From: Basidiobolus meristosporus CBS 931.73
Taxonomy: Eukaryota > Fungi > Basidiobolomycota
Assembly (NCBI GenBank): GCA_002104905.1
Contig: MCFE01000193.1
Location: forward strand, 62,001 to 126,000
DNA: 64,000 bases
Reading direction: 5' to 3'
Part shown: piece after piece, positions 42,908 through 62,552 of the stretch
How positions within the stretch are numbered: position 1 is the first letter of the stretch
Layout: every line of letters starts with the position of its first letter
The notes under the pieces: generated by a model
Databases searched by the model: none
What the model saw: the letters and a program-made list of their open reading frames with translations, nothing else
What the model was told of the DNA's origin: nothing
Program-made: the position numbers and the translations under genes

Positions 42908-43327
42908 ACCAGAATATCTTTTGACTTGGTCATTCCCCGCCACAATGCAATGCCTCAGATTAAGCAATCAATTTTAGTTTACACAGGCTGTAGCGCATTT
43001 TGTGTGATTTGCTGGAGGGAATGCATAATTGCGACTGACCAAAAATAGATCGTGTCCCTAATTTAGGTGCAATAGTGGACGCAACGGCACAAATAAGGCT
43101 GGATCAGTGTCGGCAACCAGTTCCAACCTTGAACACTTGGGTCAAATCAACGAGTGACAACACAAGCATGAGATCGGACGCGCCAGGAAGAACCTTCGAT
43201 GAATTAGCGCATCACCATATGGAGGTAGATTGTACTGAACCTTCGATATTATTAATGGTTCACCGGCTCTATAAAAGATTCCTTGCTGCACCCACCTAGT
43301 ATCATTACCACTACCACTACCATTACC

Positions 43328-44008
43328 ATGAATTCTGAATTACGCGCCAAAGCCTTCCTTTTCGACCTGGACGGCACGCTAGTCAATACAATCGCCGCTG
43401 CAGAGAGGCAGTACACCATCTGGGCCACTAAACTCGGGATCGACCCCAAGCCGGTGGTTGAATACTGCCACGGGGTCAGAGCAATCGAGGTGATGCAAAA
43501 GTTCGCACCCAAGGGGGCGAAGATCACCATTGACGATGCCAACGAGTGGGAAACTGGGTTCAGCAATGATTCGGAAGGGGTCTTCGTACTCCCGGGCATA
43601 CCAGAGCTCCTGAAGAAGCTTCCCAAACACCGCTGGGCTATTGTTACTTCGGGCGTCCGTGCCATGGCTGAAGCAAGACTACGGCAAATGGATCTTCCTG
43701 TTCCTGACGTATTCATCACAGCAGACACCGTAACCCATGGAAAACCTCACCCCGAAGGATACTTGGCTGCCGCATCCAAGCTTGGTTTCAGGCCCGACGA
43801 ATGCATCATCTTCGAGGATGCACCGGCCGGAATCGAGGCAGGAGTTAGCGCCGGGATTCGCACTATCGGTATCACCACTAGCTACAAGCCAGAAACCCTC
43901 CACAAAGCGAATGTTCTCATCGATGATTATCATGACATTCTGGTGGAAAAGTCGGCCAACGAGGAGGAGTTTGAAATCAAGGTGCTAAGAAACAGAAGAT
44001 CGGATTAA
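43328..44008 (+). CDS. HAD-superfamily sugar/glycerol-phosphate phosphatase (GPP1/DOG1/YfbT-like), intact, intronless, 226 aa
   Basis: Motif I FDLDGTLV, motif II IVTSG, GKPHPEGY and motif IV FEDAPAG; TATAAAA upstream. Confidence 0.9.
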   Translation: MNSELRAKAFLFDLDGTLVNTIAAAERQYTIWATKLGIDPKPVVEYCHGVRAIEVMQKFAPKGAKITIDDANEWETGFSNDSEGVFVLPGIPELLKKLPKHRWAIVTSGVRAMAEARLRQMDLPVPDVFITADTVTHGKPHPEGYLAAASKLGFRPDECIIFEDAPAGIEAGVSAGIRTIGITTSYKPETLHKANVLIDDYHDILVEKSANEEEFEIKVLRNRRSD

Positions 44009-44338
44009 ATCGCAAACCGCAAACCACAAACCACAAATCACTAATGGTACATCGTGCATCGCAAATCCCCAAGTAAATAGAGTCATATGGCGGCTTCCTA
44101 CTGGCCGGAATCAATTTTGTGGCCAGATCAAGATTCATTGATCCATGATGAAAACCAAATTAAAGGACAAGGCATTGCTTGTGCTGATTAGTATTTATCA
44201 TCGGAATATTGTGCCTAGCCACTCTGGCGGACTCCAGGGTAAGCGATTTCACTGACTGAAACTAGGCACGCGGTAATCGATATTGATGGGTGTAAAGGCT
44301 TGCAAATGGCTCTCTCTTCCACGGAGTATCTATCTTGC

Positions 44339-44402
44339 GACTCCGAAGCAAAGAGCCTCGAAAACATGGTAGGAGGACGCGAGGCTGCTGCCCACAATCC
44401 GG
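44339..44402 (+). pseudogene. Degenerate Con-6-like relic
   Basis: GACTCCGAAGCAAAGAGCC...GAGGCTGCTGCCCACAATCC aligns with the 5' third of the Con-6 CDS; no start codon. Confidence 0.65.
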
Positions 44403-45167
44403 CAAGAAACGCTCGGTAATTTTATCAAAAGAGTAGAGTTACCACAAGGAATCTAAGGGATCAGGATGCAAACACGGGTGTGCTGAAGAGCGATGAAATG
44501 GGTTGTTCACTTGGAATAGAAAGTGCAACAAGTACAAGCGAAATCGTAAAAATCGTGAAGAATTAGTGCAAGCAGTTGCAACCAAAATTCGGACGGACAT
44601 GGGGGGTTGTTGTTGATACTACGTCACTTGTTCCTCGCCCCAAGTTACAACGAATAGAACCCCTTGCTGAGAGTCCTTATTTGAGCTACATATATATACA
44701 TAAGCATCACGTGCGCAATATGGTTGGTAAGCCAGCTGATATGACTGTGTGGCATATGTGTGGAGGTGATGTGATGTGATGTGATGGCATGAAGAGTAGG
44801 AGTCGGACTGCACCTGGAGGAAAACTCCATCGTTGGCTAATCTAGTGGTACATCACTCTACTTGTCTGAGCATAGTCACCACCAGATGCGAGTCGAGTTT
44901 CCCGTATGGACAGCGGATCGCTGCCCACGTCATTCTAGCTAACTGAGTCAAATGCGAACTTTAACTGAGGTTAGATACGCAATGTTCTATAGCGGTGATG
45001 TCAAAGGGAATAGGTACTGAGCATACAAGGCTGCCTCCGTTCTTTGGCTGAAACTAAACACGCAACACTCGATTTCCGTGATGTCATAGGAAATATCGAA
45101 CGAGTACATAAACTTGGCACAGATCTCCGGGCACTGCAGAGTATCTATCTCATAACTCGGAAACAAC

Positions 45168-45353
45168 ATGGAATACGAAGGAAAGAACCCCGGGAACGTT
45201 GAAGGAGGATTCAAAGCAGCCGCGCACAACCCCAACGTCTCAGCCGAGAAGCAACAAGAGTCGCTAGATAAGGCATCCCAGATCCACGAAGAACGCACTG
45301 GCAAACCGCTGAAGGAGCAGACCATTGAAAAGGAATCCAAGGATTCGAAATAA
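45168..45353 (+). CDS. Con-6-like conidiation hydrophilin, copy 1 (61 aa)
   Basis: KNPGNVEGGFKAAAHNPNVS resembles the Con-6 family motif (NPxNVxxGxKAAxxNPxVS); small, charged, no Cys/Trp. Confidence 0.85.
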   Translation: MEYEGKNPGNVEGGFKAAAHNPNVSAEKQQESLDKASQIHEERTGKPLKEQTIEKESKDSK

Positions 45354-46062
45354 AGATAAGGCACGCTGCAATATGTGCGCTGATTAGGGAAGAAATACAA
45401 AGGGATTCATTCGGATTCTGGAGATCTAGGCGTCCATCGTTTTGCTTGGTTCCTCGATGATGTAATAAATACAAAAGTACGCACCTTTTTATTAGCACTT
45501 TCAAACCTTCTGGTATCATAGCTCTGTGTCCAAGTGAACATCCAAGCCAAAGCCAGGCATGAGCATCATTCAAATCTAAAGTGTTATCGTGTTGGATTAT
45601 GAGTATAGGCGATAATTAATGCACTTATACTGTAGAGCGCTTATATCGAACTTCAATCAGATGCATGATATCGTTGTTAAAGCATACTGCCCACGGAGAA
45701 ATAAAGAGGAAGAGAGGATGAATAACGCACCAATAGGCCACAGATATCAATCGCACTCCAGGCCAGATGCGGCATTCTTATTCATTTTTTCCGATTATTG
45801 CACTTGTTGACCTCGATCATACATCGCGTATCGGTCAAATCCGATCAGACAAACCGTGGCGCAAATGATTTAAGATACCAAAGACTACGCTGATCTGCAC
45901 TGTGGATATCGATCGAATCAAGCCGATGGCATAATGTCGCTGAATGAATCTAGTCATGAAGCACTCATCATTCATGATGTCACCAGAACCGCACGTCGAG
46001 TATATAAGTCTACAAAAGGTTTCCTGCTCTACAGAACATCTATCCAGCAACCCAGAAACACC

Positions 46063-46248
46063 ATGGACTACGAAGGAAAGAACCCCGGAAATGTTGAGGG
46101 AGGCTTCAAGGCTGCCGCCCACAATCCCAACGTCTCAGCCGAGAAGCAACAAGAGTCACTAGAGAAGGCATCCCAGATTCATGAAGAGCGTACCGGCAAA
46201 CCGCTGAAGGAGCAAACCATTGAAAAGGAATCCAAGGATTCAAAATAA
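46063..46248 (+). CDS. Con-6-like protein, copy 2
   Basis: MDYEGKNPGNVEGG...; TATATAA at 46001. Confidence 0.85.
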   Translation: MDYEGKNPGNVEGGFKAAAHNPNVSAEKQQESLEKASQIHEERTGKPLKEQTIEKESKDSK

Positions 46249-47047
46249 ACCTCAGATACACTACGAAGTGTACATTGAAATCTCAGTTGCCATTTCGCTT
46301 GTGTCTTGACCAGAGAGGCTGGCTTTCGCCCACAAAAGAAATGGGAGGCTTGAACTAGTAGGGAACAATAGAATGATGAAATCACTTGTCTAGTGCTCAA
46401 TCAAGCCGAAGTGCCTTCGAGTTCCCAGAACCAATGGAATACGAAAATATGAGTAGCTCTCACATATTTGGTTGTGTACTTGGAGTTTAGTGAGGTACAA
46501 CTACAATGCATTCTGATGCGAATACAGCTGCTCATGGTAACCTTGGATGGTGAAGGCCCTGGTGATGCAATTACTAGGCGTTTATATCAGGGAGAATAGG
46601 TTGTTGCAGATGGTGATCCACGTAAATTAAGTATGTGAAGCCGAGTGTGAAGCACCAGCCCAGCCACAATCTTGTATAAGATTAGGGAGTCATCAATAGA
46701 GACTCCAACTGATTTGGCATGGTCATCTCGTTGATCGTTACTATGTTTGACCTTGATCATCAATTGTGTACCTGACATAATCATCTCATCAATCGTGTAT
46801 TTATTAGTTCTGATCATGACGTTCCTTCGAAACAGTGGGTGATGATGCAGCTCAGTTATATCCCGCAGTCGTCGTGATCTTTACACTAAGGATCAATCGT
46901 TCAAACCGTCGTTGACAAGGATCAGACACTGAACCCATGACACTATCAAGACCAGATTCTGATGCCATAGGGAGTATTGTTCGTGTATAAAAGTCAGTCA
47001 AAGATATCATCTACCACAGATCATTTCTCTAATAGCTCAAAAACATC

Positions 47048-47233
47048 ATGGAATACGAAGGAAAGAACCCCGGAAATGTTGAAGGAGGATTCAAAGCCGC
47101 CGCCCACAATCCCAACGTCTCAGCCGAGAAGCAACAAGAGTCACTAGAGAAGGCATCCCAGATTCATGAGGAACGTACCGGCAAACCGTTGGAGGGGCAG
47201 ACCATTGAAAAAGAATCCAAGGATTCAAAATAA
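47048..47233 (+). CDS. Con-6-like protein, copy 3
   Basis: Intact 61-aa ORF with TATA ~60 nt upstream. Confidence 0.85.
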   Translation: MEYEGKNPGNVEGGFKAAAHNPNVSAEKQQESLEKASQIHEERTGKPLEGQTIEKESKDSK

Positions 47234-48231
47234 AACTCAGATACACTACGAAGTGTTCATTGAAAATTCAATTGCCATACTCATGTTAAAGCTCTAGAGG
47301 TAGGCCTTTTCCCGCAAAAGAAATGGGAGTCTTGATCGAGTGCGAACGATGCAATGCTCAAATCACCATCATAGTACCCAATCAAACCGAAGAGTTTGGG
47401 AGTGTTGAAAACAATGGAGTACTAAAATATGAGCAACCCTCACGTGGTTCATTGTGTATCTGGGGCTTGGTGAGTTACAACCATAATGCATTCTGATACG
47501 AATGCAACTGTTCATGAATACCTTGAAAAGTGAAGGTTTCGTTAGCGCAATCACTGAGCACATATCAACGAGAGTAAGGTATCACCGATGAGTATGCAGG
47601 AAAATTCATGTAAGCAAAGCCAAGTATGAAGTACATCCTCCTCCAAAGCTTATCCATTAATGACTACTCTAGCTGAATTTGTTCGTCCATTATGTTTACA
47701 TTCTAGAGGGTGAAGGCTTGCGGTGGTGCAATCACTTGGCACATATGCTAATGGCTGTAGGATATCGCCGATGGGAGCCCATGAAGATTTAGGTAAGTCA
47801 ATTATGAAATACAACCCACTGCAATGCTTGGTCATCAATGGTGACTCCAGCTGGATTTGTTCGCCCATTGCTTCCAAGTTCAATAAGGTTACAGCATTCC
47901 CTCGATCTGAGATTGTGGTAGTTTACACCTTAAATGATGTTGTGATGCGAGTGAAGTGTCATCCATTGAGACCCTTTGTGGGTATAATCTTTTCATCGAT
48001 CGTGTACTTGTTGATTCCGATCGTCGTGCTCCTTCGATCTGAGGGGCGCTGACATGACCTTGTTGATGTCCGCAGTCATCGCGATCATCACGATCTGTAC
48101 CCTGGGAATCGATCAGTGCAAACGTCTGACGAAGACTAGACATTGATGCCATAGGGGGTAAGGTTCATGTATATAAGCTTGTCGAAAGTACCTTCTTCCA
48201 CACATCATTTCTCCAATAACTCAAAAGCATC

Positions 48232-48417
48232 ATGGAATACGAAGGAAAGAACCCCGGAAATGTCGAAGGAGGACTCAAGGCTGCCGCTCACAATCCCAAC
48301 GTCTCAGCCGAGAAGCAGCAGGAGTCACTAGAAAAGGCATCTCAGATCCATGAAGAGCGTACCGGCGAGCCGTTGAAGGATCAAACTATTCAAAAGGAAT
48401 CCAAGGATTCAAAATAA
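48232..48417 (+). CDS. Con-6-like protein, copy 4
   Basis: Intact 61-aa ORF. Confidence 0.85.
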   Translation: MEYEGKNPGNVEGGLKAAAHNPNVSAEKQQESLEKASQIHEERTGEPLKDQTIQKESKDSK

Positions 48418-49140
48418 AGACAAAATACGCTCTAACGTGCGTGCTGAATAATGAAAGAACTTGGGTCAATATTGGCAATGTGAACCTTCCTAATTACCAA
48501 AAAAATAAGAGTCGTAACTGGAAATAGCAGTCTTGCCAAAGAGGGGAATTCATTGAAAGGGGTTCAGTAGGGTTCTGGAGACGTAGGCTCCTCGATCATA
48601 AGATGGATGCAACTCAACGGATATTTTACGAATCCTTTCAAACCTCTGGGTCTTATAATTAACAATGTCCAAGCGGGTGCCTGGGACAAAAAAGTACGCC
48701 AATATCGTGTAGATATGAGGAATAATCGTGCTGAAGTAGAGACAAGTATTTACACATGTAGTCAAGTACCAATTAGGTGAAAGATATTATTCTCAATGCC
48801 ATATTTATAGAGATGAATAATGCACCAATGGGGTGCAGAAATCAATCATACTTTGGACCAGATGCGGCATTCTTATTTATTATTTCCGATTATTGTACTT
48901 GTTGACCTCGATCATGCATCGCGTCTTGGTCAAATCTGATCAGACAAACCGTTGCGTAAATGATCGAACATACCCAAACCTATTCCGATCTGCGCTGTGG
49001 ATATCGATCGTGTAAAGCCGACAGTATAATGACACGAAGTACTCACCATTCATGATGTCATCAGGGCCATAGGCTGAGTATATATTCTTGGGAAAGGCTT
49101 CCTCTTCTGCAGAATATCTATCCAGCAACCCAGAAACACC

Positions 49141-49326
49141 ATGGAATACGAAGGAAAGAACCCCGGGAACGTTGAAGGAGGACTCAAGGCTGCCGCACAC
49201 AATCCCAACGTCTCAGCCGAGAAGCAACAAGAGTCACTAGAGAAGGCATCCCAGATTCATGAAGAGCGTACTGGTAAACCGTTGGAAGGGCAGACCATCG
49301 AAAAGGAATCCAAGGATTCAAAATAA
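49141..49326 (+). CDS. Con-6-like protein, copy 5
   Basis: Intact 61-aa ORF. Confidence 0.85.
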   Translation: MEYEGKNPGNVEGGLKAAAHNPNVSAEKQQESLEKASQIHEERTGKPLEGQTIEKESKDSK

Positions 49327-49940
49327 AATTCATGCACACTGTCAAGTGTACCTCAAAACTTCAGTTACTATGTTACTTGCGTGGAATAAATAAATACGTG
49401 TATCCTTCGCTTAGTTAATTGTATATTTGGGGCTTGGGGAGTTACAACCACAATACATTCTGATGAGAATGCAGCTGCTCATGATAACCTTGGAAAGTAA
49501 GAGCTTCGGTAGCATAATCAATTGGCATATATCAATGACAGTATAGCCGATGGGAATCCATGTAAATTCAAGTATGCGAGGTCAAGTGGCATGCACCAGA
49601 TTAGCTACTGTCCTATATGAGACTTAGGAGTCATCAATTGAGACTCTAGTTGACTTGAGTTAGTCATCTCATCGATCATGGCACTAATTGACCTTGATCG
49701 TCGATTGTGTGCATGTCATAGTCATCTCATCGATCGTGTATTTATCAGTTCTGATCACAACGTTCTTTCAATCTGGTAGGTGCTGATGCAGCTCTGTTAT
49801 ATCCCGCAGTCGTCAAGATCTTTGAAGCATGGATCGATCGAAGATCAGGCGCCGATGCCATAGAGAGTAAGGCTCGTGTATATAAACCAGTCAAAGGTAG
49901 CTTATCCCACAGATCATTACTCTAATAACTCAGAAACATC

Positions 49941-50126
49941 ATGGAATACGAAGGAAAGAACCCCGGAAATGTCGAAGGAGGACTCAAGGCTGCCGCTCAC
50001 AATCCCAACGTCTCAGCCGAGAAGCAACAGGAGTCACTAGAAAAGGCATCTCAGATCCATGAAGAGCGTACAGGCGAGCCGTTGAAGGATCAAACTATTC
50101 AAAAGGAATCCAAGGATTCAAAATAA
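49941..50126 (+). CDS. Con-6-like protein, copy 6
   Basis: Intact 61-aa ORF. Confidence 0.85.
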   Translation: MEYEGKNPGNVEGGLKAAAHNPNVSAEKQQESLEKASQIHEERTGEPLKDQTIQKESKDSK

Positions 50127-50807
50127 AGACAAGGCACGCTCCAATGCGCATGCTGATTATTGTTGCAAACCTTGTCATTGAATATGTATAAATCCATTAA
50201 GTGGTCGGATTCCACACATTCATGTGGGCCTTGCATAATTCATCCTTAGTCCACCCACCATTATAACATAACAGAGTTGCGAGAATTCGAGATTTGTCAA
50301 GCACCTAAATCTCAGTATCTGATTACGAAAGCGAGAATGCAAGCAAAATACGAACTTGCATATCAAGTATAAAGAATAATCGTGTTGAGGTGTGAATTTA
50401 AGCCATTGTTGAAGCACTGATCCTATACGTACGAATGTGTGTAGTCAAGCTCAGATGGATAAGAAAGCAACAGAAAAAAAAGGCGACTGACTTGTCAATA
50501 GGACTAATATGTTACCACACTTCAGGCCAGACGCGACATTCTTATTGATTGTGGATGTCGATCGTACATTGTGTATCAGACAAATCTGATCATACTAACT
50601 GCTGTGCAAATGATCCAACATACCCAAAGATATCCCGATCTGCACTGTGGATATCGATCGAGTCAAGCCGATGGCATAATGTTGCTGATTGAGTCTAGTC
50701 ATGAAGCACTCATCATTCATGATGTCACCAGAACCGCAGGTCGAGTATATAAGTCTACAAAAGGTTTCCTGGTCTACAGAATATCTATCCAGCAACCCAG
50801 AAACGCC

Positions 50808-50993
50808 ATGGAATACGAAGGAAAGAACCCCGGAAATGTTGAGGGAGGCTTCAAGGCTGCCGCACACAACCCAAATGTCTCAGCCGAGAAGCAACAAGAG
50901 TCACTAGAGAAGGCATCCCAGATTCATGAAGAGCGTACCGGCAAACCGCTGAAGGAACAAACCATTGAGAAGGAATCCAAGGATTCAAAATAA
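50808..50993 (+). CDS. Con-6-like protein, copy 7
   Basis: Intact 61-aa ORF from ATG 50808; the longer track ORF is upstream read-through. Confidence 0.85.
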   Translation: MEYEGKNPGNVEGGFKAAAHNPNVSAEKQQESLEKASQIHEERTGKPLKEQTIEKESKDSK

Positions 50994-53459
50994 AACTCAG
51001 ATACACTACGAAGTGTACATTGAAATCTCAGTTGCCATTTCGCTTGTGTCTTGACCAGAGAGGCTGGCTTTCGCCCACAAAAGAAATGGGAGGCTTGAAC
51101 CAGTAGGGAACAATAGAATGATGAAATCACTTGTCTAGTGCTCAATCAAGCCGAAGTGCCTTCGAGTTCCCAGAACAATGGAGCACTAAAATATGAGCAA
51201 CTCTCACCTGTCTGATTGTGTACTCGGAGTTTAGTGAGGTACAACTATAATGCATTCGAGTGTGAATGCAGCTGCTCATGGTAACCATGGAAGGTGAAGG
51301 CCCTGGTGGGGCAATTACTTGGCGTTTAAGTCAGGGAGAGTAGGTTATCGCAGATGGAAACTCTCACTCAACATATGTATAAACACGCTCTAGGCAATCA
51401 TTCCATTGACTACAGATAGAGGTGAAACCACGTGCTTGGTGGGTTTTAAACTTTCATCTTCGGCGATACCTGAGTAGTTTTCTAAACGGCATATCGGTGG
51501 TATGATCCTCAATAAAAGGTGGCCTTGAGGAGTACTCCGAATTCTGAGCATCTGCTGATCCACATGACTTTTGTAGCCTGCTTAGGTTACGGACCAGGAT
51601 GGTACTGGGTTCATCACCCGATACCTTAATATCCAACTCCGTGTGTTTATCTTAAATCTCCTACCCTTCCAGGATGTATGTTTTCTTCTGGTGGTCAGGA
51701 GATCGATTACGCCAATTCGCTTTTTTTGCGGGGGGGGTTGTCATATGGGAGAAGAGTGTGTCTCGGCAATGTGGTTGCTGATGAGATTTACTCGTTTTCG
51801 GTCTTGTTCATCAAATTTTGACAAGCTAACCACAGACCTACCCCCTGCTATGCAAGCTGCATCGATGGTGAAAGTCGACTAGGCTCTTCAAACAAGGTGG
51901 GAAGTGACATCTGGTGGGATGGTGGAATATGCTGGAGTAGATGGGGCAGATTATTACCTGCATCGCAGTAGATAGCACTCGGCTATTAGCCTAGAACGGT
52001 TTCGACATCCTCCAGCAATAGCATATCCTGATCTAAACAATATTCTCCCTGGAATCGTGTCTACCAGGCTATGTGCACAGCATGCAAGGATCCATTTTTT
52101 TCGCCAGAACGTGGCGGCGGGTCCTGTGATGGAATCAAAGAACGGTTCAATTTCCCGAGATCTGTGTCGTTGTAATTGGATTTCTCGGTGCCAGCCAACA
52201 ACCACATTGTTTCAATTTCTGTGCGATGCGAAATGCATCTCCCAATTACAGGAACGGATGCGTTGCAATTTCCCCTGGAAACTGGGTCCTGATAGGTGGG
52301 CCCGCTAGATCGGAGCTGGCTAAGGAATCTACATATCCGATTCGGATCCGATCGTATCGCGCGCAAATCAGTGTCATGATGGATGAAGGTGGGTCTCGTG
52401 AGTGAGTTCTGATGATTCGACAAGTAGGCGTTCTAAGAATGTGGAAGCAGGTTCAAGATAGGAAGTAATGTGCGCTGGGTTAAGTATTATTACCTGTAAC
52501 CATGTTTGGTAAAGGCAATGATGGTAAGTTTTTATATCGAACTGGGTGGCCTATACGAAGGTAAATTTCACTCGGGTACTCCTACGTAATGTTGACTGTC
52601 GAATGTGTTGCTCGCTTGCTGGAATTTTGGGTGGTAATGTTTCCGCTTTGCACTTTTGAAGACTTCATGTGCTACAGGGAATCAAATTGTATTGCTGATG
52701 ATCACTGAGAACGCAGAACATATGTGCTGTAGACTGGGGTTATGGTCCCTGTATCTGCATGCGGGCAATACGAGGAGATAGTAGGATACATAGACTCCAT
52801 CACACAAGAAATTCCCAAACATGAAGCCAATTGATGGGAATTCAGTCCGTTTGTTGCACCAAGTTCTCTTGTCTGAGATTAGGAAATGCTGGGTCTAGGA
52901 TGATTTGTATGTGATTGCTCAACACTAGCGAGAAGAGGCATTTGAGATATGGATTCATCACCGTTTAGGCCTTATTCGAGCCACGTATAGACACTTAGTG
53001 TGACGCTTGAGTTGACACACACTTGACACTTCATAGTTCAGTGTTACCCAAAGTGAAAATGTAAGGGTCGATCTACTCAGTCAGGGCCAATAGCTAGCCA
53101 GAGCACGTGACGAAGCTACATGGTAAATGAGTCTCGACCAAATAAGTGGCACCATCGATTCCGTTAGCATCCATCACGGTTATCAAAGTGAAGAGGATGG
53201 CTACCTGGTAGTCAATCGAGTTTCCACCACCTCGGAAACGCTTACACTCCTCCGGTAATTGGTCGTCCCTTCGCCACAATACAAGCAGTTGGATCCTCTT
53301 ATCTATCAATCCAAATTGGTTAGATTTTGGGCTGGATTAGGTAGAGTGAAATCAAGGTTTCAGAGTGGGTTTCACTTCCCTCGAAGGAAATCCAGGCTAC
53401 GTTCATTTTTTGGTTAATAGGCAACTAAATCAAGCAGATGTGGTTCATTCTACCTGAAG

Positions 53460-53535
53460 TTCGGTGCACAACTGATCTTGATAGATAGGGACGCTTTTTC
53501 GGTGCACAACTGATCTTGATAGATAGGGACGCTTT
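53460..53535. repeat. Perfect 38-bp tandem duplication
   Basis: TTCGGTGCACAACTGATCTTGATAGATAGGGACGCTTT x2. Confidence 0.9.
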
Positions 53536-54391
53536 TATCAGAGAAGTGAATCTGGTGGCTCCTAAATTGGCGCACTAAACTTCGTCGCTAAGGGCGTGCC
53601 ACTTTATTTGATTGTAAGGAAGGGTGAGCCCAGATTAGTCCAATTCAGACCGCAATTAGTCCGTTGTTGACCAGGGATTTGTTGTCTTGACCAGAATCTG
53701 AAGGTTGAAGGTTAGAAATGTCACTTGATACTATCTAACCGCTGAATCATTCACTTACTGAATAGTCAATATTAAATGAGTCTAGTACCCCTGATTGCCC
53801 GCAAAGGCTTCAACAGCCTCACTTGGTTCGTGACCAGGCTCCATGATGCGTCGTTAAGGCATCCAAGATCCTGGTGACCTTGTCGACTGTCAGCTCCGTG
53901 AGGATAGAAGCCCACTCATTTTGCCCAATAGGGCAATTTACGATTGTGTGCGTGGTTTTCGAATGGTGCTGTTTATTCAGTACTCTACAAGGCTTTATGT
54001 GCACCCGTAGTGTGCTGATATCCTAAAATCTCATCGCATAGCTACATGTAATAGTATACAAGTGTTATCAGACAAAGAACCCACAAAATCATAGGGCCCA
54101 TTTTCCTTACTCCACAAGGGAGCGTTCTAGGTGGTATCGAAGCCTGAGAGAATATAGATTAGGTATGATCAGTCCAGGGTGAAGCTTAGGATTGGGTGAG
54201 TGTAAATCATTTCCATAAGCATATATTAATCTTTCTCCGTTTACTAATACTACGTTAGGATAAGTGCCGAAGTGGATGGTGGCAGATGTGCCTGGTTTCT
54301 TGACGCGTAAAAACTCCACTGTCCTACTTCCTAGTTGGCGGTCATCTAACATTATATAAGACCCGACAATCTACATGAATCAATATTCAAA

Positions 54392-56207
54392 ATGTGTTTC
54401 AGATACTTGTCTTCCAGCTTGCTCCTCCTTGGCTCTTTGGCGTTGGCTGCGGACCACCTAGGAAAGCCTGGGTCCAAATTCTCAAAATACAGGTAAGCGA
54501 AAGCGTGCGCACGTAGCAGTACGGATATCTACTAAACAAGACCATTATAGACCGACCTACCACTTTCAACCGCCAAAGAATTGGATGAATGACCCCTGTG
54601 CACCCATGAAGACCCCGGATGGAAAGTACCATCTTTTCTATCAATACAATCCCTACGATGCGATTTGGGGAAACATGACTTGGGGCCATGCGTCCTCCTC
54701 TGATCTGATCCATTGGGAAGACGAAGAAAATGCTCTGGAGTCCGACCAGCCCTACGACCACCTTGGTATCTTCTCTGGTAGCGGAATCACCAAGGGCTAT
54801 CAAGGGAAGCCAACCGTTGGTTATACTGCAGTATCGAAGCTTCCCATCTCTTGGAAGATCGACTACCCGTTAGATGCAGAACAGCAAGCACTCGCATATA
54901 CAGATGACAATGGGGCCACTTGGCAAAAGCTAGGCGTCGTCTTGCCTACACCACCTGATGTCAACAGAACCGGTTTTAGAGATCCTTTTCTGTTCCGTAG
55001 CTCGACCTTCGACTCGTTGTTAGCTGGTAGCAACCGTAGTTTGGAGAATATATACATGACCATTAGCGGAGGGACCAATGCCACCACGAAGGGAGGAAGG
55101 CTTTGGCTGTACAAATCCCAAGACTGGATCAACTGGGAATTACTCCCTGCTCCGTTCTATGGAGCTGCTGGAGACCAGCCTCTCAACAAGTTCTCAGAGT
55201 ATACTCTGGGTCACAACTGGGAGATGGCCAACTATTTTGTCTTGAATGAGGAGGAGAAAGCCAACCAATGGCATACGGTCATCATCGGGGTCGAAGGAAA
55301 CAGTAAGTACAACACCATCCGCTGGCCTATTTGGGCTATGGGACGTATCCAAGCCAATAACAACAGCATCGAGTTTGTACCAGTCATCAGTGGTATACTC
55401 GACAATGGGATCGACTATGCGGACAATTCATTCTACGATCCTGCCACAGGGCAGAGGATTTTGTGGGGCTGGGTCACTGAGGATGATTCGGAGAATCTCC
55501 AGATCCGCAAAGCCCAGGGATGGTCGGGCATGCTAACTGTACCTCGAGAGATCTTCCTCTACCAAAAGACCGGGGTCTTCTACACCAACCAACTCCAAAG
55601 CCACATAGGAGGCCTCGACTTCACCTGGGATGAGACGCAGCAGACCAATGTCATCTCAACCCTAGGCATTAGACCAATCAAGCAGCTAGAACATCTTAGA
55701 GATCAGGTTGATGTAGAGCTTCATGACTTCGAATTGGGGCATTCGGACACCACCCCCTATATTACTTCCGGAAAGCGTAGCTACGAAATTAGCGCGGTGT
55801 TCGATTTCTCCAAAGACCCAACCGCTCAAGCGGGGATCACTCTGATGAGATCGGAGGATGGAAAAGAAGAGACGACTATCCTGTATGACCCAGTGACCGC
55901 GAACATGACCATCACTCGTAGTAGATCCTCCTTGAACCCGCTTTACGCCAACACTACCCAATGGGGTACGTTCCCACTCTTATACACCGCCGATGGACTT
56001 GAGAAACTGGAGTTGCGAGTGTTCGTTGACAAATCCATCATTGAAGTGTTCGCTAACGATCGATTTGCCCTTACTACTCGTGTCTACCCGACACTTCATA
56101 GCTCAACCCAAGTCACCCTGAACCTGGCTAAGGGCCAGAGCGTCTTGGTTGAAGAGATGACCCTCTGGCCTATAACTGATCGTGCTTTTCTAAACCGCGA
56201 CAAATAA
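54392..56207 (+). CDS. Secreted GH32 beta-fructofuranosidase (invertase/inulinase/fructosyltransferase-like), ~585 aa, exons 54392-54492 and 54551-56207
   Basis: Signal peptide MCFRYLSSSLLLLGSLALA; 58-nt GTAAGC...TAG intron joins to RPTYHFQPPKNWMNDP. Motifs WGHASS, FSGS, FRDP, WEMAN and C-terminal LRVFVDKSIIEVF. Confidence 0.93.
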
Positions 56208-56624
56208 ACCAGAATATCTTTTGACTTGGTCATTCCCCGCCACAATGCAATGCCTCAGATTAAGCAATCAATTTTAGTTTACACAGGCTGTAGCGCATTT
56301 TGTGTGATTCCCTGGAAGGAATGCATAATTGCGACTGACCAAAAATAGATCGTGTCCCTAATTTAGGTGCAATAGTGGACGCAACGGCACAAATAAGGCT
56401 GGATCGGTGTCGGCAACCAGTTCCAACCTTGAACACTTGGGTCAAATCAACGAGTGACAACACAAGCATGAGATCGGACGCGCCAGGAAGAACCTTCGAT
56501 GAATTAGCGCATCACCATATGGAGGTAGATTGTACTGAACCTTCGATATTATTAATAGTTCACCAGCTCTATAAAAGATTCCTTGCTGCACCCACCTATC
56601 ATTACCACTACCACTACCATTACC

Positions 56625-57304
56625 ATGAGTTCTCAATTACGCGCCAAAGCCTTCCTTTTCGACCTGGACGGCACGCTAGTCAATACAATCGCCGCTGCAG
56701 AGAGGCAGTACACCATCTGGGCCACTAAACTCGGGATCGACCCCAAGCCGGTGGTTGAATACTGCCACGGGGTCAGAGCAATCGAGGTGATGCAAAAGTT
56801 CACACCCAAGGGGGCGAAGATCACCATTGATGATGCCAACGAGTGGGAAACTGGGTTCAGCAATGATTCAGAAGGGGTCTTCGTACTCCCGGGCATACCA
56901 GAGCTCCTGAAGAAGCTTCCCAAACACCGCTGGGCTATTGTTACTTCGGGCGTCCGTGCCATGGCTGAAGCAAGACTACGGCAAATGGATCTTCCTGTTC
57001 CTGACGTACTCATCACAGCAGACACCGTAACCCATGGAAAACCTCACCCCGAAGGATACTTGGCTGCCGCATCCAAGCTTGGTTTCAGGCCCGACGAATG
57101 CATCATCTTCGAGGATGCACCGGCCGGAATCGAGGCAGGAGTTAGCGCCGGGATTCGCACTATCGGTATCACCACTAGCTACAAGCCAGAACCCTCCACA
57201 AAGCGAATGTTCTCATCGATGATTATCATGACATTCTGGTGGAAAAGTCGGCCAACGAGGAGGAGTTTGAAATCAAGGTGCTAAGAAACAGAAGATCGGA
57301 TTAA
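56625..57304 (+). pseudogene. Second HAD phosphatase copy with a 1-bp deletion near the 3' end
   Basis: Near-identical to 43328-44008, but CCAGAACCC replaces CCAGAAACCC near 57190, changing the C-terminus (ORF ends 57284). Could be an assembly indel. Confidence 0.75.
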
Positions 57305-57306
57305 AT

Positions 57307-57362
57307 CGCAAACCGCAAACCGCAAACCGCAAACCGCAAACCGCAAACCGCAAACCGCAAAT
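57307..57362. repeat. (CGCAAAC)n 7-bp tandem repeat, 7 perfect units plus 1 imperfect
   Basis: Directly visible; only 3-4 imperfect units in the left copy (~44011-44040). Confidence 0.95.
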
Positions 57363-57661
57363 CACTAATGGTACATCGTGCATCGCAAATCCCCAAGTAA
57401 ATAGAGTCACACGAAGGCTTCCTACTGGCCGGAATCAATTTTGTGGCCAGATCAAGATTCATTGATCCATGATGAAACCAAATTAAAGGACAAGGCATTG
57501 CTTGTGCTGATTAGTATTTATCATCGGAATATTGTTCCTAGCCACTCTGGCGGACTCCAGGGTAAGCGACTCCGCTGACTGAAACTAGGCACGCGATAAT
57601 CGATATTGATGGGTGTAAAGGCTTGCAAATGGCTCTCTCTTCCACCGAGTATCTATCTTGC

Positions 57662-57724
57662 GACTCCGAAGCAAAGAGCCTCGAAAACATGGTAGGAGAA
57701 CTCAAGGTTGCTGCCCACAATCCG
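57662..57724 (+). pseudogene. Degenerate Con-6-like relic (duplicate of 44339)
   Basis: GGAGAACTCAAGGTTGCTGCCCACAATCC aligns with the Con-6 GGLKAAAHNP codons. Confidence 0.65.
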
Positions 57725-58486
57725 ACAAGAATCGCTCGATAATTTTATCGAAAGAGTAGAGCTACCACAAGGAATCTAAGGGCTCAGGATGCAAGCACGG
57801 GTGTGTTGAATAGTGATGAAATGGGTTGTTCACTTGGAATAGAAAGTGCCCCAAGTATAAGCAAAGTCGTAAAAATCTTGAAGAATTAGTGCAAGCAGTT
57901 GCTAACCAAAATTCGGACGGACATGGGGGGTTGTTGTTGATACTACGTCACTTGTTCCTCGCCCCAAGTTACAACGAATAGAACCCTTGCTGAGAGTCCT
58001 TATTTGAGCTACATATATATACATAAGCATCACGTGTGCAATATGGTTGCTAAGTCAGCTGATATGACTGTGTGGCATATGTGTGGAGGTGATGTGATGT
58101 GATGGCATGAAGAGTAGGAGTCGGACTGCACCTGGAGGAAAACTACATCGTTGGCTAATCTAGTGGTACATCACTCTACTTGTCGTGAGCATAGTCACCA
58201 CCAGATGCGAGTCGAGTTTCCCGTATGGACAGCGGATCGCTGCCCACGTCATTCTAGCTAACTGAGTCAAATGCGAACTTTAACTGAGGTTAGATACGCA
58301 ATGTTCTATAGCGGTGATGTCAAAGGGAATAGGTACTGAGCATACAAGGCTGCCTCCGTTCTTTGGCTGAAACTAAACACGCAACACTCGATTTCCGTGA
58401 TGTCATAGGAAATATCGAACGAGTACATAAACTTGGCACAGATCTCCGGGCACTGCAGAGTATCTATCTCATAACTCGGAAACAAC

Positions 58487-58672
58487 ATGGAATACGAAGG
58501 AAAGAACCCCGGGAACGTTGAAGGAGGATTCAAAGCAGCCGCGCACAACCCCAACGTCTCAGCCGAGAAGCAACAAGAGTCGCTAGATAAGGCATCCCAG
58601 ATCCACGAAGAACGCACTGGCAAACCGCTGAAGGAGCAGACCATTGAAAAGGAATCCAAGGATTCGAAATAA
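58487..58672 (+). CDS. Con-6-like protein, copy 8 (appears identical to copy 1)
   Basis: Intact 61-aa ORF. Confidence 0.85.
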   Translation: MEYEGKNPGNVEGGFKAAAHNPNVSAEKQQESLDKASQIHEERTGKPLKEQTIEKESKDSK

Positions 58673-59416
58673 AGATTTGATACATTGCTCGGTATTTACT
58701 AAAAGTCCGTGACCAGCAAGTAGGATAAGATACAGGAAGAGTATAGATGGACAAAAATTATGTATATGGTCTTTAGCTACAGATGTTCTACCTTGCGTAG
58801 ATGGAATTTTCGGTTAGCGTGGCATATAAGTCGAAGCATGAGATATCAGCCTTTGCCAGCAAAACTACCGGGATTAGGGAACATCGAAATATTATTGATC
58901 ACTTGTGTAACGCTTGAATCAGCAAAATACTGGTGTAATTTGGGTTCGGTACGTTGCAAACATATGGTGTTCCAATGGGTATATCAATATTATATGTCAA
59001 GACATTACTAGTGCGATCACTTTGCATATATGTAAATGAGAGAAGGATGTTGCTGATATAAAACGAGGAATATTAAGAGAAGTATGAAATACAACATTCA
59101 AGTGTAGTTATGACCGAATGTACGGTTGTGATAAGAGTGGAGTGTCGTCTATAGAGACTAGCTGATTTTTCCTGTTACATCTATTCATCAACCACGTACC
59201 AATTTCTCCCAATCTCAGTGATCCTTCGATCTGGTGGGTGGTGACATGACCCTGCTGTGTTCCGCAGTCATCGCGATTTGTGCACTAGAGATCGATCAGT
59301 GCAAATACCGTGGAAAAACACTGGACATTGATAACATAAGGAGTAAGGCTCGTGTATATAAGCTTATCAAAGGTACTTTCTTCCGTAGATCGTTTCTCTA
59401 ATAACTCAAAAGCACC

Positions 59417-59602
59417 ATGGAATACGAAGGAAAGAACCCCGGAAATGTTGAAGGTGGACTCAAGGCTGCCGCTCACAATCCCAACGTCTCAGCCGAGAAG
59501 CAACAGGAGTCACTGGATAAGGCATCCCAGATCCATGAAGAGCGTACAGGCGAGCCGTTGAAGGATCAAACTATTCAAAAGGAGTCTAAGGATTCAAAAT
59601 AA
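59417..59602 (+). CDS. Con-6-like protein, copy 9
   Basis: Intact 61-aa ORF. Confidence 0.85.
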   Translation: MEYEGKNPGNVEGGLKAAAHNPNVSAEKQQESLDKASQIHEERTGEPLKDQTIQKESKDSK

Positions 59603-60340
59603 AGACAGACACACTTCGAAGCGTATGCTGATTAATGAAAGAACTTGGGTCAATATTGGCAATGCTAACCTTCCTAATTACCAAAAAAATAGAGTCGTAA
59701 CTGGAAATAGCAGTCTTGCCAAAGAGGGGAATTCATTGAAAGGGGTTCAGTAGGGTTCTGGAGACGTAGGCTCCTCGATCATAAGATGGATGCAACTCAA
59801 CGGATATTTTACGAATCCTTTCAAACCTCTGGGTCTTATAATTAACAATGTCCAAGCGGGTGCCTGGGACAAAAAAGTACGCCAATATCGTGTAGATATG
59901 AGGAATAATCGTGCTGAAGTATAGGCAAGTATTCACACATGTAGTCAAGTACCAATTAGGTGAAAGATATTATTCTCAATGCCATATTTATAGAGATGAA
60001 TAATGCACCAATGGGGTGCAGAAATCAATCATACTTTGGACCAGATGCGGCATTCTTATTTATTATTTCCGTTTATTGTACTTGTTGACCTCGATCATGC
60101 ATCGCGTCTTAGTCAGATCTGATCAGACAAACCGTTGCGTAAATGATCGAACATGCCCAAACCTATTCCTATCTGCACTGTGGATATCGATCGAGTCAAG
60201 CCGATGGCATAATGTTGCTGATTCAGTCTAGTCACGAAGCAGTCACCATTCATGATGTCACTAGGACCATAGGCCGAGTATATAAGTTTACCAAAGGTTT
60301 CCTGGTCTACAGAATATCTATCCAGCAACCCAGAAACACC

Positions 60341-60526
60341 ATGGAATACGAAGGAAAGAACCCCGGAAATGTTGAAGGAGGACTCAAGGCCGCCGCGCAC
60401 AACCCCAACGTCTCAGCCGAGAAGCAACAAGAGTCACTAGAGAAGGCATCGCAGATTCACGAAGAGCGTACCGGCAAGCCGCTTAAGGAGCAGACCATTG
60501 AAAAGGAATCCAAGCATTCAAAATAA
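60341..60526 (+). CDS. Con-6-like protein, copy 10
   Basis: Intact 61-aa ORF ending KHSK. Confidence 0.85.
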   Translation: MEYEGKNPGNVEGGLKAAAHNPNVSAEKQQESLEKASQIHEERTGKPLKEQTIEKESKHSK

Positions 60527-61481
60527 AGATCGAACACGCTCTCTTATATGAATTGAAAACGCGAATCCCTATAATGTAGAAATACAGTAATCTTTCATTT
60601 GGAGTTTGAAGTTGCAGGTAGATTTTACATGGAAAACGTTATGATAAATGTATCCCAGTTCGTGGAATGATGGCATTGAGAAACAAAATAGCCCAGAGCT
60701 ATCAGTCATTTTTGACAATAGAACACCATCGTCCAACCAAGGCTAAAGGGACCGAAAAGCCTCAGAGTGCCATTACTCCTCACTCTCTTAGTAAAGCGAG
60801 ATATTGTGATCGTGAACAATGTACGTGGCTTTTCCTTTAAATTTCAGGTACCATACCACTTAAAATTACCATGTGTATCCTTCATTTGTTTGATTGTGTA
60901 TGAGTTTGGTAAGTTACAACAATGATCTATTCTGATAAGAATACAGCTGCTTATGACAACCATGGAAAGTGAAGGCTTCGGTGGTGCAATCAGTTGGCGT
61001 ATATGTCTATGACAGTAGTATATCGCCGATGGGGGCCCATAAAATTTAGGCAAGTCAATTATGAAATACAACTCAGTGCAAAGCTTGGTCATCAGTGGTG
61101 ACTCCAGCTGGATTTGCTCGCCCAGTGTTTTAAAGTTCAGTAAGGTTGCAGTACTCCCTCAATCTGGGATTGTGGTAGTTGACACCTTAAGTGATGTTGT
61201 GACGTGAGTGAAGTGCCATCCATTGAGACCCTTTGTTAGCACAGCCTTTTCATCGATCGCGTTCTTGTTAGCTCCGATCACAGTGCTCCTTCGATCTGAG
61301 TGGTGATGACATGACTCTGCTGTGTTCTGCAGTCATCGCGACCTGCATACTAGGGATCGATCAGTGCAAATGCCGTGTAAAAACACTGGACATTGATGTC
61401 ATAAGGAGTAAGGTTCGGGTATATAAGCCAGTCAAAGTTGTCCTCTTCCATGCACCATTTTTCCAATAACTCAAAAGCATC

Positions 61482-61668
61482 ATGGAATACGAAGGAAAGA
61501 ACCCCGGAAATGTCGAAGGAGGACTCAAGGCTGCCGCTCACAATCCCAACGTCTCAGCCGAGAAGCAACAGGAGTCACTAGAGTAAGGCATCCCAGATTC
61601 ATGAAGAGCGTACAGGCGAGCCGTTGAAGGATCAAACTATTCAAAAGGAGTCTAAGGATTCAAAATAA
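61482..61668 (+). pseudogene. Con-6-like copy 11 with a 1-bp insertion creating an early TAA
   Basis: CTAGAGTAAGGCA versus CTAGAGAAGGCA; stop after residue 34. Confidence 0.8.
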
Positions 61669-62365
61669 AGACAGACACACTCCGAGGTGTATGCTTATTA
61701 ATGAAAGAATTTGGAAAAAATCAGAGATCTTAACCTTGACTAGTAGGAAATATTTCGAATGAAATTTAGCCAGATGCTTGACTGACATTGAGGCTTTGCT
61801 TTTTGAAGATCTCACTAATAGTTATGTGCATACCAAGCGCGAGAGGAAAAAGCAATGAATAATGGGGATATTATAGGGCTTTTCAGGAGTTTCATGGGTG
61901 TTTTGGTCGAAGGCAGGTTATGGTGTTTGATGGTTTATTACCTAATACTTCAAAGTATGAATCCAGTCTAATGATGTGCTTGGGTATCGCTGAGGGCTGT
62001 ACTTAGTAGTATCGATTTGAAGAATTGACGAAACAAACGAAATTGAATACATTTAGTTAACATTCAGGTTCTTATTCCTCGCCTGTGATTGAACTCCTTG
62101 TTACACTTGCTCACCTTTACTGTACACTGTGTATCAGTCAAATCCGACCAGACTAAATGTTGCGCAAATGATCGAACATACCCAAAGCTACCCCGATCTG
62201 CACTGTGAATATCGATCGAGTCAAGCCGATGGCATAATGTCGCTGATTGAGTCTAGTCACGAAGCAGTCACCATTCATGATGTCACCAGGGCCATAGGCC
62301 GAGTATATAAGTCTACCAAAGGTTTCCTGGTCTACAGAATATCTATCCCACAACCCAGAAACACC

Positions 62366-62552
62366 ATGGAATACGAAGGAAAGAACCCCGGAAATGTTGA
62401 AGGAGGACTCAAGGCCGCCGCGCACAACCCCAACGTCTCAGCCGAGAAGCAACAAGAGTCACTAGAGAAGGCATCCCAGATTCATGAAGAGCGTACCGGC
62501 AAACCGCTTGAAGGAGCAGACCATTGAAAAGGAATCCAAGCATTCCAAATAA
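62366..62552 (+). pseudogene. Con-6-like copy 12 with a late 1-bp insertion (altered, shortened C-terminus)
   Basis: CCGCTTGAAGGAG versus CCGCTGAAGGAG; ends PLEGADH* at 62527. Confidence 0.75.

Follow-up and report, generated by a model that had tools for sequence, protein, structure and literature searches.

Most genes of a tandem Con-6 array in the fungus Basidiobolus meristosporus CBS 931.73 are preceded by a two-part promoter element of fixed spacing, GATCT-N11-ATCRATC, which, judged by its pattern of conservation, is very probably functional and under constraint. Its reader may be the White Collar complex (WCC) and its output induction by light--an assignment in which both the binder and the light output are argued by analogy with Neurospora, and to which a probability of roughly 0.4 is given here.

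The window analyzed (a single stretch of 64,000 nucleotides) contains 12 tandem Con-6 genes encoding small spore proteins of 61 aa (Table 1). These match the Pfam Con-6 family (PF10346) with 39.9 bits and an E-value of 3.6e-10, the gathering cutoff being 25, which places them within the family; relatives of the array proteins are annotated as 'conidiation-specific protein 6'. Like the products of N. crassa con-6 and A. nidulans conF, they are small and hydrophilic and possess the Pfam Con-6 domain; unlike those products, they consist of a single Con-6 repeat within 61 aa and are encoded by 12 tandem copies, with more arrays on other B. meristosporus contigs. Copy 11 is probably a pseudogene. 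In a word search, B. meristosporus and B. ranarum were the only species with Con-6 relatives; the Con-6 alignment had no relatives in the metagenomes against which it was scanned, the exact proteins of copies 4/6 and 7 were absent from the other assemblies and transcript contigs in which they were looked up, and a look-up of RNA runs for positions 45000-50999 listed none.

Table 1. Con-6 genes, promoter elements and related features of the array, in window coordinates. The first coordinate of each Con-6 copy is that of its ATG.
Feature	Position	Strand	Remarks
Relic Con-6 fragment 5' of copy 1	44345..44401	+	
Class A promoter, copy 1	44908..45167	+	ATCGATC absent; TATA degenerate
Con-6 copy 1, 61 aa	45168..45353	+	class A promoter; element absent
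Element, copy 2 (class B)	45892..45914	+	TATA box GTATATAA at 46000-46007
Con-6 copy 2	46063..46248	+	
Element, copy 3 (class C2)	46876..46898	+	variant core ATCAATC, CpG to CpA
Con-6 copy 3	47048..47233	+	
Element, copy 4 (class C1)	48092..48114	+	also ATCGATC at 47995 and TCGATC sites upstream
Con-6 copy 4	48232..48417	+	
Element, copy 5 (class B)	48987..49009	+	
Con-6 copy 5	49141..49326	+	
Element, copy 6 (class C2)	49817..49839	+	core GATCGATCGA
Con-6 copy 6	49941..50126	+	
Element, copy 7 (class B)	50637..50659	+	
Con-6 copy 7	50808..50993	+	
Relic Con-6 fragment 5' of copy 8	57668..57727	+	
Class A promoter, copy 8	58227..58486	+	100% identical to copy 1 promoter; element absent
Con-6 copy 8	58487..58672	+	
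Element, copy 9 (class C1)	59275..59297	+	degenerate upstream half GATTT; core GATCGATC
Con-6 copy 9	59417..59602	+	
Element, copy 10 (class B)	60170..60192	+	degenerate upstream half TATCT
Con-6 copy 10	60341..60526	+	
Element, copy 11 (class C1)	61340..61362	+	degenerate upstream half GACCT
Con-6 copy 11	61482..61665	+	frame broken near 61584
Element, copy 12 (class B)	62195..62217	+	
Con-6 copy 12	62366..62549	+	frame shift near 62508; C-terminus altered or truncated

An earlier, sequence-only reading of this DNA had singled out the word ATCGATC upstream of nine of the copies as a candidate White Collar light-response element (LRE). The word or its complement is indeed present at every site named (45908/45911, 48108, 49003, 49832, 50653, 59290, 60186, 61355 and 62211), at -108 to -155 relative to the ATG, and the extra TCGATC and CGATC words said to lie farther 5' are there as well; in the copy 6 promoter, additional ATCGATC words at 49671 and 49729 fall within a 58-bp internal duplication. 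Copy 3, described as degenerate, has GATCAATCG at -157, with the core ATCAATC, and copies 1 and 8, described as lacking the motif, contain nothing comparable in their promoters. The motif as first described is nevertheless incomplete: ATCGATC is the downstream half of a sharply delimited, 23-bp bipartite element, GATCT-N11-ATCRATC. An element of this form (with at most one mismatch) occurs at 10 of the 12 copies, always in one orientation and 46-96 nt 5' of a conserved TATA box. When the window is scanned at the same stringency, the only other match is a chance one, on the minus strand and with one mismatch.

The apparent enrichment of the motif depends on the background chosen. A shuffle of the whole window (20 occurrences observed versus 4.8 expected) was rejected as unsuitable, because positions 1-34,800 are CpG-depleted (observed/expected about 0.08) and contain no CGATC whatsoever; it was replaced by 35.9 kb of local, CpG-normal DNA outside the array. 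Against this local background, the enrichment is still 29-fold for ATCGATC, 27-fold for TCGATC and 3.2-fold for GATC. An unbiased enumeration of 7-mers, allowing one mismatch, ranked TCGATCG first, with matches in 13 of 13 representatives.

The element also sits within a cluster of GATC words. Element-bearing B. meristosporus promoters contain 3-8 GATC per 200 bp (-290..-91), where the background averages 0.97 and does not exceed 4. Each ATCGATC site has GATCGA on one of the two strands (9 of the 12 window promoters); the core GATC is preceded, 19 bp upstream, by a second, with others another 20-30 bp away; and GATC pairs spaced 10-30 bp apart occur in 9 of the 10 element-bearing window promoters, copy 9 being the exception. 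That such a cluster acts at the level of DNA or chromatin, either through adenine methylation at ApT (a dinucleotide that GATC contains) or through nucleosome exclusion, is extremely unlikely: a passage of PMC11258239 describes adenine methylation as prominent in early-diverging fungi, but fixed spacing, fixed orientation and a sharp two-block footprint are typical of protein recognition and not of a compositional signal.

The promoters of the array have diverged widely. Those of classes B and C, which the earlier reading had found to align poorly, have no BLAST similarity upstream of -20 (between copies 7 and 4, for instance, similarity begins only at -20), and synonymous divergence between the two classes is 0.62. 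Of the 6-8-mers in -300..-21, only those of the TATA box and of ATCGATC recur in four or more of the five promoters of each class. The earlier reading took this survival in two classes as a sign of conservation. The survival itself is real; as proof of conservation it fails, since in a neutral JC simulation, run at half of the smallest inter-class dS, drift readily leaves two diverged lineages with a common 7-mer (P 0.88). Because two-class survival alone is insufficient, the case for constraint rests instead on additional lineages, on the partner half-site and on a second species. In the same simulation, an invariant 7-mer in four lineages has P 0.04 and, when accompanied by a 5-mer partner at N11, P 1.5e-4, so that the four lineages and partner half-site together reject pure ancestry, which the earlier reading had itself put forward as the alternative.

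The distribution of conservation within the promoters is equally uneven. Between eight promoter lineages, ATCGATC scores 0.93, which equals the TATA box (0.93), the mean being 0.34. When only the B. meristosporus lineages are compared, column by column, GATCT scores 0.90-1.00 and ATCGATC 0.86-1.00, and the 11 spacer columns score 0.10-0.46, save for one T at 0.86. A column-permutation test reached the observed block in none of 20,000 shuffles. CpG is a mutable site, and the central CpG is retained in 13 of the 14 motif-bearing B. meristosporus promoters (10 in the window and four in a second array).

That second array, on contig MCFE01000600, comprises four further copies within a different gene neighborhood, each with the element upstream and with GATCGA (4/4). 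The distance from element to TATA box is 93-96 nt in class B, in copy 3 and in three copies of the second array (M5a-c). In B. ranarum, from which B. meristosporus is separated by saturated dS, all six copies contain [A/T]TC[A/G]ATCGG, which precedes the TATA box by 86-104 nt. Because exact GATCGA is there mostly replaced by ATCAATCG and the GATCT partner is absent, the strictly conserved core reduces to ATCRATCG, a loose WCC word; at the aligned site, GATC is missing from two of the six copies (Br2 and Br6). Viewed across species, the core CGATYGAT amounts to two adjacent GATN repeats.

All carriers of the element are paralogues, and gene conversion operates within the array (dS between the coding sequences of copies 4 and 6 is 0.055); the lineages are therefore imperfectly independent. 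Together with the drift expected for two lineages, this might suggest that the motif is a functionless leftover of the common descent of duplicated promoters, perhaps refreshed by conversion. Such an origin is nonetheless quite improbable: the half-sites are invariant while identity in the flanks and spacer is close to random, and conversion would bring the flanks along too; the partnered motif in at least four lineages is poorly explained by drift, as is retention of the mutable CpG; and in B. ranarum the core has kept its distance to the TATA box although synonymous sites are saturated. Conservation thus exceeds that of the flanking promoter across both diverged lineages and species, as in a phylogenetic footprint, and supports the view that ATCGATC is a genuinely conserved promoter footprint, due neither to chance nor simply to shared ancestry. 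GATCT-N11-ATCGATC would then be a selectively maintained cis-element of proximal Con-6 promoters, upstream of the TATA box.

The promoters of copies 1 and 8 differ from the rest in having neither the GATC cluster nor a canonical TATA box. That of copy 1 has a single GATC in -290..-91 and a second at -46, and retains TGATGTCAT at about -89. The element is absent from these class A promoters. A second conserved block, the bZIP/CRE-like TGATGYCAY, occurs at -88 in all promoter classes, copies 1 and 8 included.

What might read the element? GATC-type half-sites would most likely be recognized by zinc fingers of the GATA type, and from the sequence the odds lean somewhat toward such a reader. The leading candidate among these would be the WCC, that is, homologues of WC-1 and WC-2. 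The Neurospora complex is described as binding a GATCGA core in passages of PMC3991626, PMC9225392 (citing Smith 2010) and PMC7493669, and it prefers tandem GATC motifs spaced 10-30 bp apart (PMC4378982). The target gene family fits as well: few genes of N. crassa respond to light as strongly as con-6 (induced 2^6 to 2^8.5-fold), conF and conJ of A. nidulans are light-induced (PMC4169166), and the conJ promoter is occupied by LreA/LreB (PMC10219052). WC-1 homologues were present in all entomophthoralean data sets examined in one study (bioRxiv 10.1101/2023.09.13.557621); a literature search on Basidiobolus photoreceptors found nothing. The array element has the sequence marks of a WCC-type LRE, namely a GATCGA or GATN-repeat core and several GATC at 10-30 bp, and it resembles the Neurospora elements further in its GATC density and in its con-6 family target. 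It differs from them in its fixed N11 and fixed orientation, where Neurospora LREs tolerate variable spacing, and in the B. ranarum version, which lacks a strict GATC. If the resemblance is meaningful, blue light would act through the WCC to turn on the array, as happens with con-6 in Neurospora.

A GATA-type finger other than White Collar, such as an SUB1- or NsdD-like protein acting downstream of light or in development, is an improbable reader. WC1, WC2 and SUB1 have zinc fingers of high homology, each binding a core related to GATC (PMC4378982), and the SUB1 site, like the element, is two-part with a GATC-type first half. It is unlike the element in its second half and spacing, however, and of the 18 promoters scanned for the SUB1 motif (a/c)GAT(c/g)-N6-(a/c)TG(c/t), only 2 had it, at non-homologous positions, so that a SUB1-type site was rejected. 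The SreA/Urbs1 iron-GATA box ATCWGATAA shares with the element an ATC followed by GAT; it too was rejected as a match, the element being ATCGATC(G/A), without the W spacer and without GATAA.

That the factor reading a constrained element has nothing to do with light--for example, a sporulation-stage or a stress/desiccation regulator of a Con-6 hydrophilin in conidia--is a real possibility, at odds well short of even. The conservation evidence is silent on the binding factor; the con genes are chiefly developmental, with expression in conidiation (PMC3991626); GATC is sometimes missing from the cross-species core ATCRATCG; and other factor families could recognize the ATCGAT palindrome. Pointing the same way are the TGATGYCAY block shared by all classes, even by the element-less copies, and the dependence of A. 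nidulans conJ induction, by light and by stress, on the bZIP factor AtfA (PMC10219052). On the other side, no developmental factor of fungi known to bind ATCGATC/GATCGA was identified in this analysis, and homotypic clustering of GATC at 10-30 bp is a published WCC signature (PMC4378982).

Control by the White Collar complex invites a broader and more doubtful proposal: that the regulatory edge from White Collar to con-6, including its GATCGA/tandem-GATC grammar, predates the split between Basidiobolus and Dikarya and was spread in Basidiobolus by the tandem amplification of Con-6 to dozens of genes, copies 1 and 8 being retained without the element for expression independent of light. The promoter comparison on which this draws covers B. 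meristosporus and B. ranarum.

To our knowledge, no LRE has been defined in a zoopagomycete-grade fungus such as Basidiobolus, nor in any early-diverging fungus. Nature has in effect replicated a single 23-bp candidate element about ten times in this array, which also supplies variants (the ATCAATC of copy 3 and the degenerate upstream halves of copies 9, 10 and 11) and, in copies 1 and 8, negative controls. If light control is true, most terrestrial fungi would descend from an ancestor that already had both the DNA specificity of the White Collar zinc fingers and the control of Con-6 by light; if the edge from White Collar to con-6 is ancient, the element would be the first LRE defined outside Dikarya and the edge a rare transcription factor/target pair conserved for more than half a billion years. 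And if light turns out to have no effect, the element would still point to some other regulator of a spore-protein family that has been greatly amplified.

The sequence-only reading had proposed that a conserved ATCGATC upstream of the tandem Con-6 genes is a candidate White Collar light-response element. ATCGATC or its complement is indeed present at every position then assigned to it, lying 108 to 155 nt ahead of the start codon of copies 2, 4, 5, 6, 7, 9, 10, 11 and 12; copy 3 does carry a degenerate site, which reads GATCAATCG, and nothing comparable occurs in the promoter of either copy 1 or copy 8. Copies 1 and 8 share one and the same 260-nt promoter sequence, which contains one GATC in the region scanned and no canonical TATA box; it is reasonable to suppose that these two copies may be under different control.

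The window lies on contig MCFE01000193.1 of Basidiobolus meristosporus CBS 931.73. Its twelve Con-6 genes, all on the plus strand, each consist of a single 61-codon exon and form two blocks between 45.1 and 62.6 kb, with a HAD-hydrolase gene and a relic Con-6 fragment ahead of each block; their products score above the Pfam Con-6 threshold, and the frame is broken in copies 11 and 12. Purifying selection on the coding sequence is strong (dN 0.007-0.04). At synonymous sites, genes of promoter classes B and C have diverged by 0.62, class A and the copies on another contig lie at 0.8-0.9, and the comparison with B. ranarum is saturated. The units containing copies 1 and 8 are duplicates (97.5% identity, promoters 100% identical), after which the order of promoter classes differs (A B C2 C1 B C2 B in block 1; A C1 B C1 B in block 2); shortly after the second HAD gene comes a ~21-nt minisatellite that is missing beside the first. 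Public B. meristosporus models (P0001, P0002, P0003, P0006, P0007, P0013, P0014) join adjacent 61-aa Con-6 ORFs via long 'introns', and some instead insert a 29-nt 'intron' crossing the TATA box; B. ranarum Con-6 genes are annotated as single-exon 60-aa genes, and the fusions are probably annotation artefacts.

Features of the Con-6 array and of related loci (window coordinates unless marked L005, the Con-6 locus on contig MCFE01000600)
Feature	Copies	Position	Strand	Content
Block 1	1-7	45168-50993	+	ORFs
Block 2	8-12	58487-62552	+	ORFs
Promoter class A	1, 8			
Promoter class B	2, 5, 7, 10, 12			
Promoter class C	3, 4, 6, 9, 11			C1 = 4, 9, 11; C2 = 3, 6
First duplicated unit	1	43283-45353		HAD gene, relic Con-6, copy 1
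Second duplicated unit	8	56583-58672		HAD gene, relic Con-6, copy 8
Minisatellite		57273-57410	-	ORFs with AVCGLRF repeats
Gene models with long or 29-nt 'introns'		45168-62552		
Frame break	11	near 61584		
Frame break	12	near 62508		
Copy 4	4	48232-48417	+	
Copy 6	6	49941-50126	+	
TGATGYCAY block	all 12	e.g. 45079, 45975, 48144		
58-bp tandem duplication	6	49671-49735		promoter
58-bp tandem duplication		L005 ~11353-11411		promoter of L005 copy at 11596
Orphan promoter		L005 12195-12330		bipartite element, TATA-like box
Degenerate fifth Con-6 copy		L005 12619-12846		frameshifted
CpG-poor domain		1-34800		CpG o/e 0.05-0.15, GC 0.36-0.46, no CGATC/GATCG
CpG-normal domain		34800-64000		CpG o/e 0.73-0.87

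Because all carriers of the element (GATCT-N11-ATCGATC, 23 bp) are paralogues, the real question is whether it reflects shared ancestry or constraint. The claim that the two major promoter classes otherwise align poorly is correct, since BLAST finds no match between class B and class C promoters and similarity between copies 7 and 4 starts only at -20. An alignment-free comparison of the region from -300 to -21 finds no 6-, 7- or 8-mer shared by at least 4/5 promoters of class B and at least 4/5 of class C other than the TATA box (GTATATAA, centred on no other position than -63) and ATCGATC. A conservation profile of 16 aligned promoters counts only identity between eight lineages (B, C1, C2, four L005 copies and B. 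ranarum); its mean is 0.34, and the windows at ATCGATC and at the TATA box both reach 0.93. Resolved to single columns, the B. meristosporus lineages show a bipartite footprint: GATCT scores 0.90-1.00 and ATCGATC 0.86-1.00, while the eleven spacer columns score 0.10-0.46 (except for one T at 0.86) and the flanks 0.17-0.46. Column shuffling reached the observed block in 0/20,000 trials, and in an unbiased enumeration of all 7-mers, allowing one mismatch, over 13 lineage representatives TCGATCG ranks first.

Survival of the motif in both promoter classes, on which the earlier argument had drawn, is real but insufficient alone: in a neutral simulation (Jukes-Cantor, no indels, branches of half the smallest inter-class dS) some 7-mer stays invariant with P = 0.88 in two lineages, 0.24 in three and 0.04 in four. 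Pure shared ancestry is rejected once four lineages are combined with the 5-mer partner at N11 (P = 1.5e-4), and the simulation is conservative because the real promoters, which cannot be aligned at all, exceed the simulated divergence. Gene conversion is an unlikely source of the shared motif: flanks would travel along with it, yet they are not conserved. Conversion does act on coding sequence: the proteins of copies 4 and 6 are identical and their genes differ by a dS of only 0.055, yet their promoters are unalignable upstream of -87, which implies conversion restricted to the coding part and the core promoter.

The motif is also enriched over CpG-normal background. A whole-window shuffle was rejected as a background, since it inflates enrichment because positions 1-34,800 are CpG-depleted (CpG o/e ~0.08) and contain zero CGATC; it was replaced by non-array DNA of normal CpG content, 35.9 kb in all, taken from the window and L005. 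Against this, ATCGATC is 29-fold, TCGATC 27-fold and GATC 3.2-fold commoner in the twelve 300-nt promoters, and element-bearing promoters contain 3-8 GATC per 200 bp (background mean 0.97, maximum 4). The compositional boundary at 34800 is itself sharp, and suggests a cytosine-methylated, deamination-worn repeat domain beside an unmethylated gene domain.

Two further B. meristosporus loci with Con-6 genes were compared. One, L003 on contig MCFE01000470, nearly duplicates block 1 and so contributes no independent information. The other, L005, has a different gene neighbourhood, with four intact copies and a degenerate fifth; ATCGATC lies at -126 to -158 in 4/4 intact copies, three of which have the exact GATCT-N11-ATCRATC. 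Within the ~100 kb of B. meristosporus DNA examined, every exact match to the bipartite pattern lies upstream of a Con-6 gene, except for one in an orphan L005 promoter. This orphan has no coding sequence behind it, and the degenerate fifth copy lies ~400 nt downstream. The promoter of copy 6 and that of the L005 copy at 11596 each contain a 58-bp internal tandem duplication, which has doubled a distal motif-bearing segment with CTCATCGATC[A/G]TG.

B. ranarum has at least six 60-aa Con-6 copies on short contigs. Outside the TATA box and the block [A/T]TC[A/G]ATCGG, their promoters show essentially no alignment with the B. meristosporus ones. This block is found in 6/6 B. ranarum copies and precedes the TATA box by 86-104 nt, compared with 93-96 nt for class B, copy 3 and three L005 copies (M5a-c). 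It reads TTCGATCGG in one B. ranarum copy and ATCAATCG in the remaining ones, the latter being the CpG-to-CpA variant also seen in window copy 3. ATCGA[C/T]GATA is retained as well, and distal GATCAATCGAG is intact in 2/6 copies, with TCAATCGAG in 4/6; the GATCT partner half-site is not kept in the six promoters. Taken together, the tests within B. meristosporus and the comparison with B. ranarum put the probability of a real, selectively maintained element at roughly 0.85.

How might such an element act? Its orientation is fixed, 46-96 nt upstream of an equally conserved TATA box, from whose position transcription probably starts ~30 nt upstream of the ATG; the element thus sits where a proximal activator site belongs. 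In sequence it is a series of GATC/CGAT half-sites. The light-activated White Collar complex (WCC) of Neurospora recognises GATCGA (PMC3991626; PMC9225392 and PMC7493669, both citing Smith 2010), and strong WCC sites are clusters of GATC motifs at 10-30 bp spacing, since up to four GATA-type fingers are available in a dimer of WC-1/WC-2 protomers (PMC4378982). Moreover, light induction of con-6 and con-10 ranks with the strongest in Neurospora, conF and conJ are light-induced in Aspergillus (PMC4169166), and the conJ promoter is occupied by LreA/LreB (PMC10219052). Like Neurospora WCC sites, Basidiobolus promoters hold GATCGA, a second GATC 19 bp away and more 20-30 bp further; because they fit this grammar, the WCC is tentatively the best single candidate reader of the element, at somewhat less than even odds. 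A search for RNA runs listed none, and look-ups with the exact proteins of copies 4/6 and 7 returned no transcript contigs.

The main rival explanation is that a developmental or stress regulator reads the element instead. Unlike the WCC word, the core conserved across species, ATCRATCG, does not always include GATC, and, unlike in described light-response elements, the spacing is fixed at N11. WC1, WC2 and SUB1 fingers all recognise GATC-related cores (PMC4378982); the SUB1 bipartite word is not conserved in the promoters scanned. A separate block, TGATGYCAY, lies at about -88 in all twelve copies and three classes, copies 1 and 8 included; one mismatch from the CRE TGACGTCA, it is possibly a bZIP (AtfA-type) site and, speculatively, a common developmental or stress input, by analogy with AtfA at Aspergillus conJ (PMC10219052).

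Literature searches turned up no publication dealing with photoreceptors or light-response elements in Basidiobolus. For the White Collar reading, the closest known system is the Neurospora WCC light-response element, whose defining sequence features the Basidiobolus element shares, making it a candidate member of the WCC-type light-response elements.
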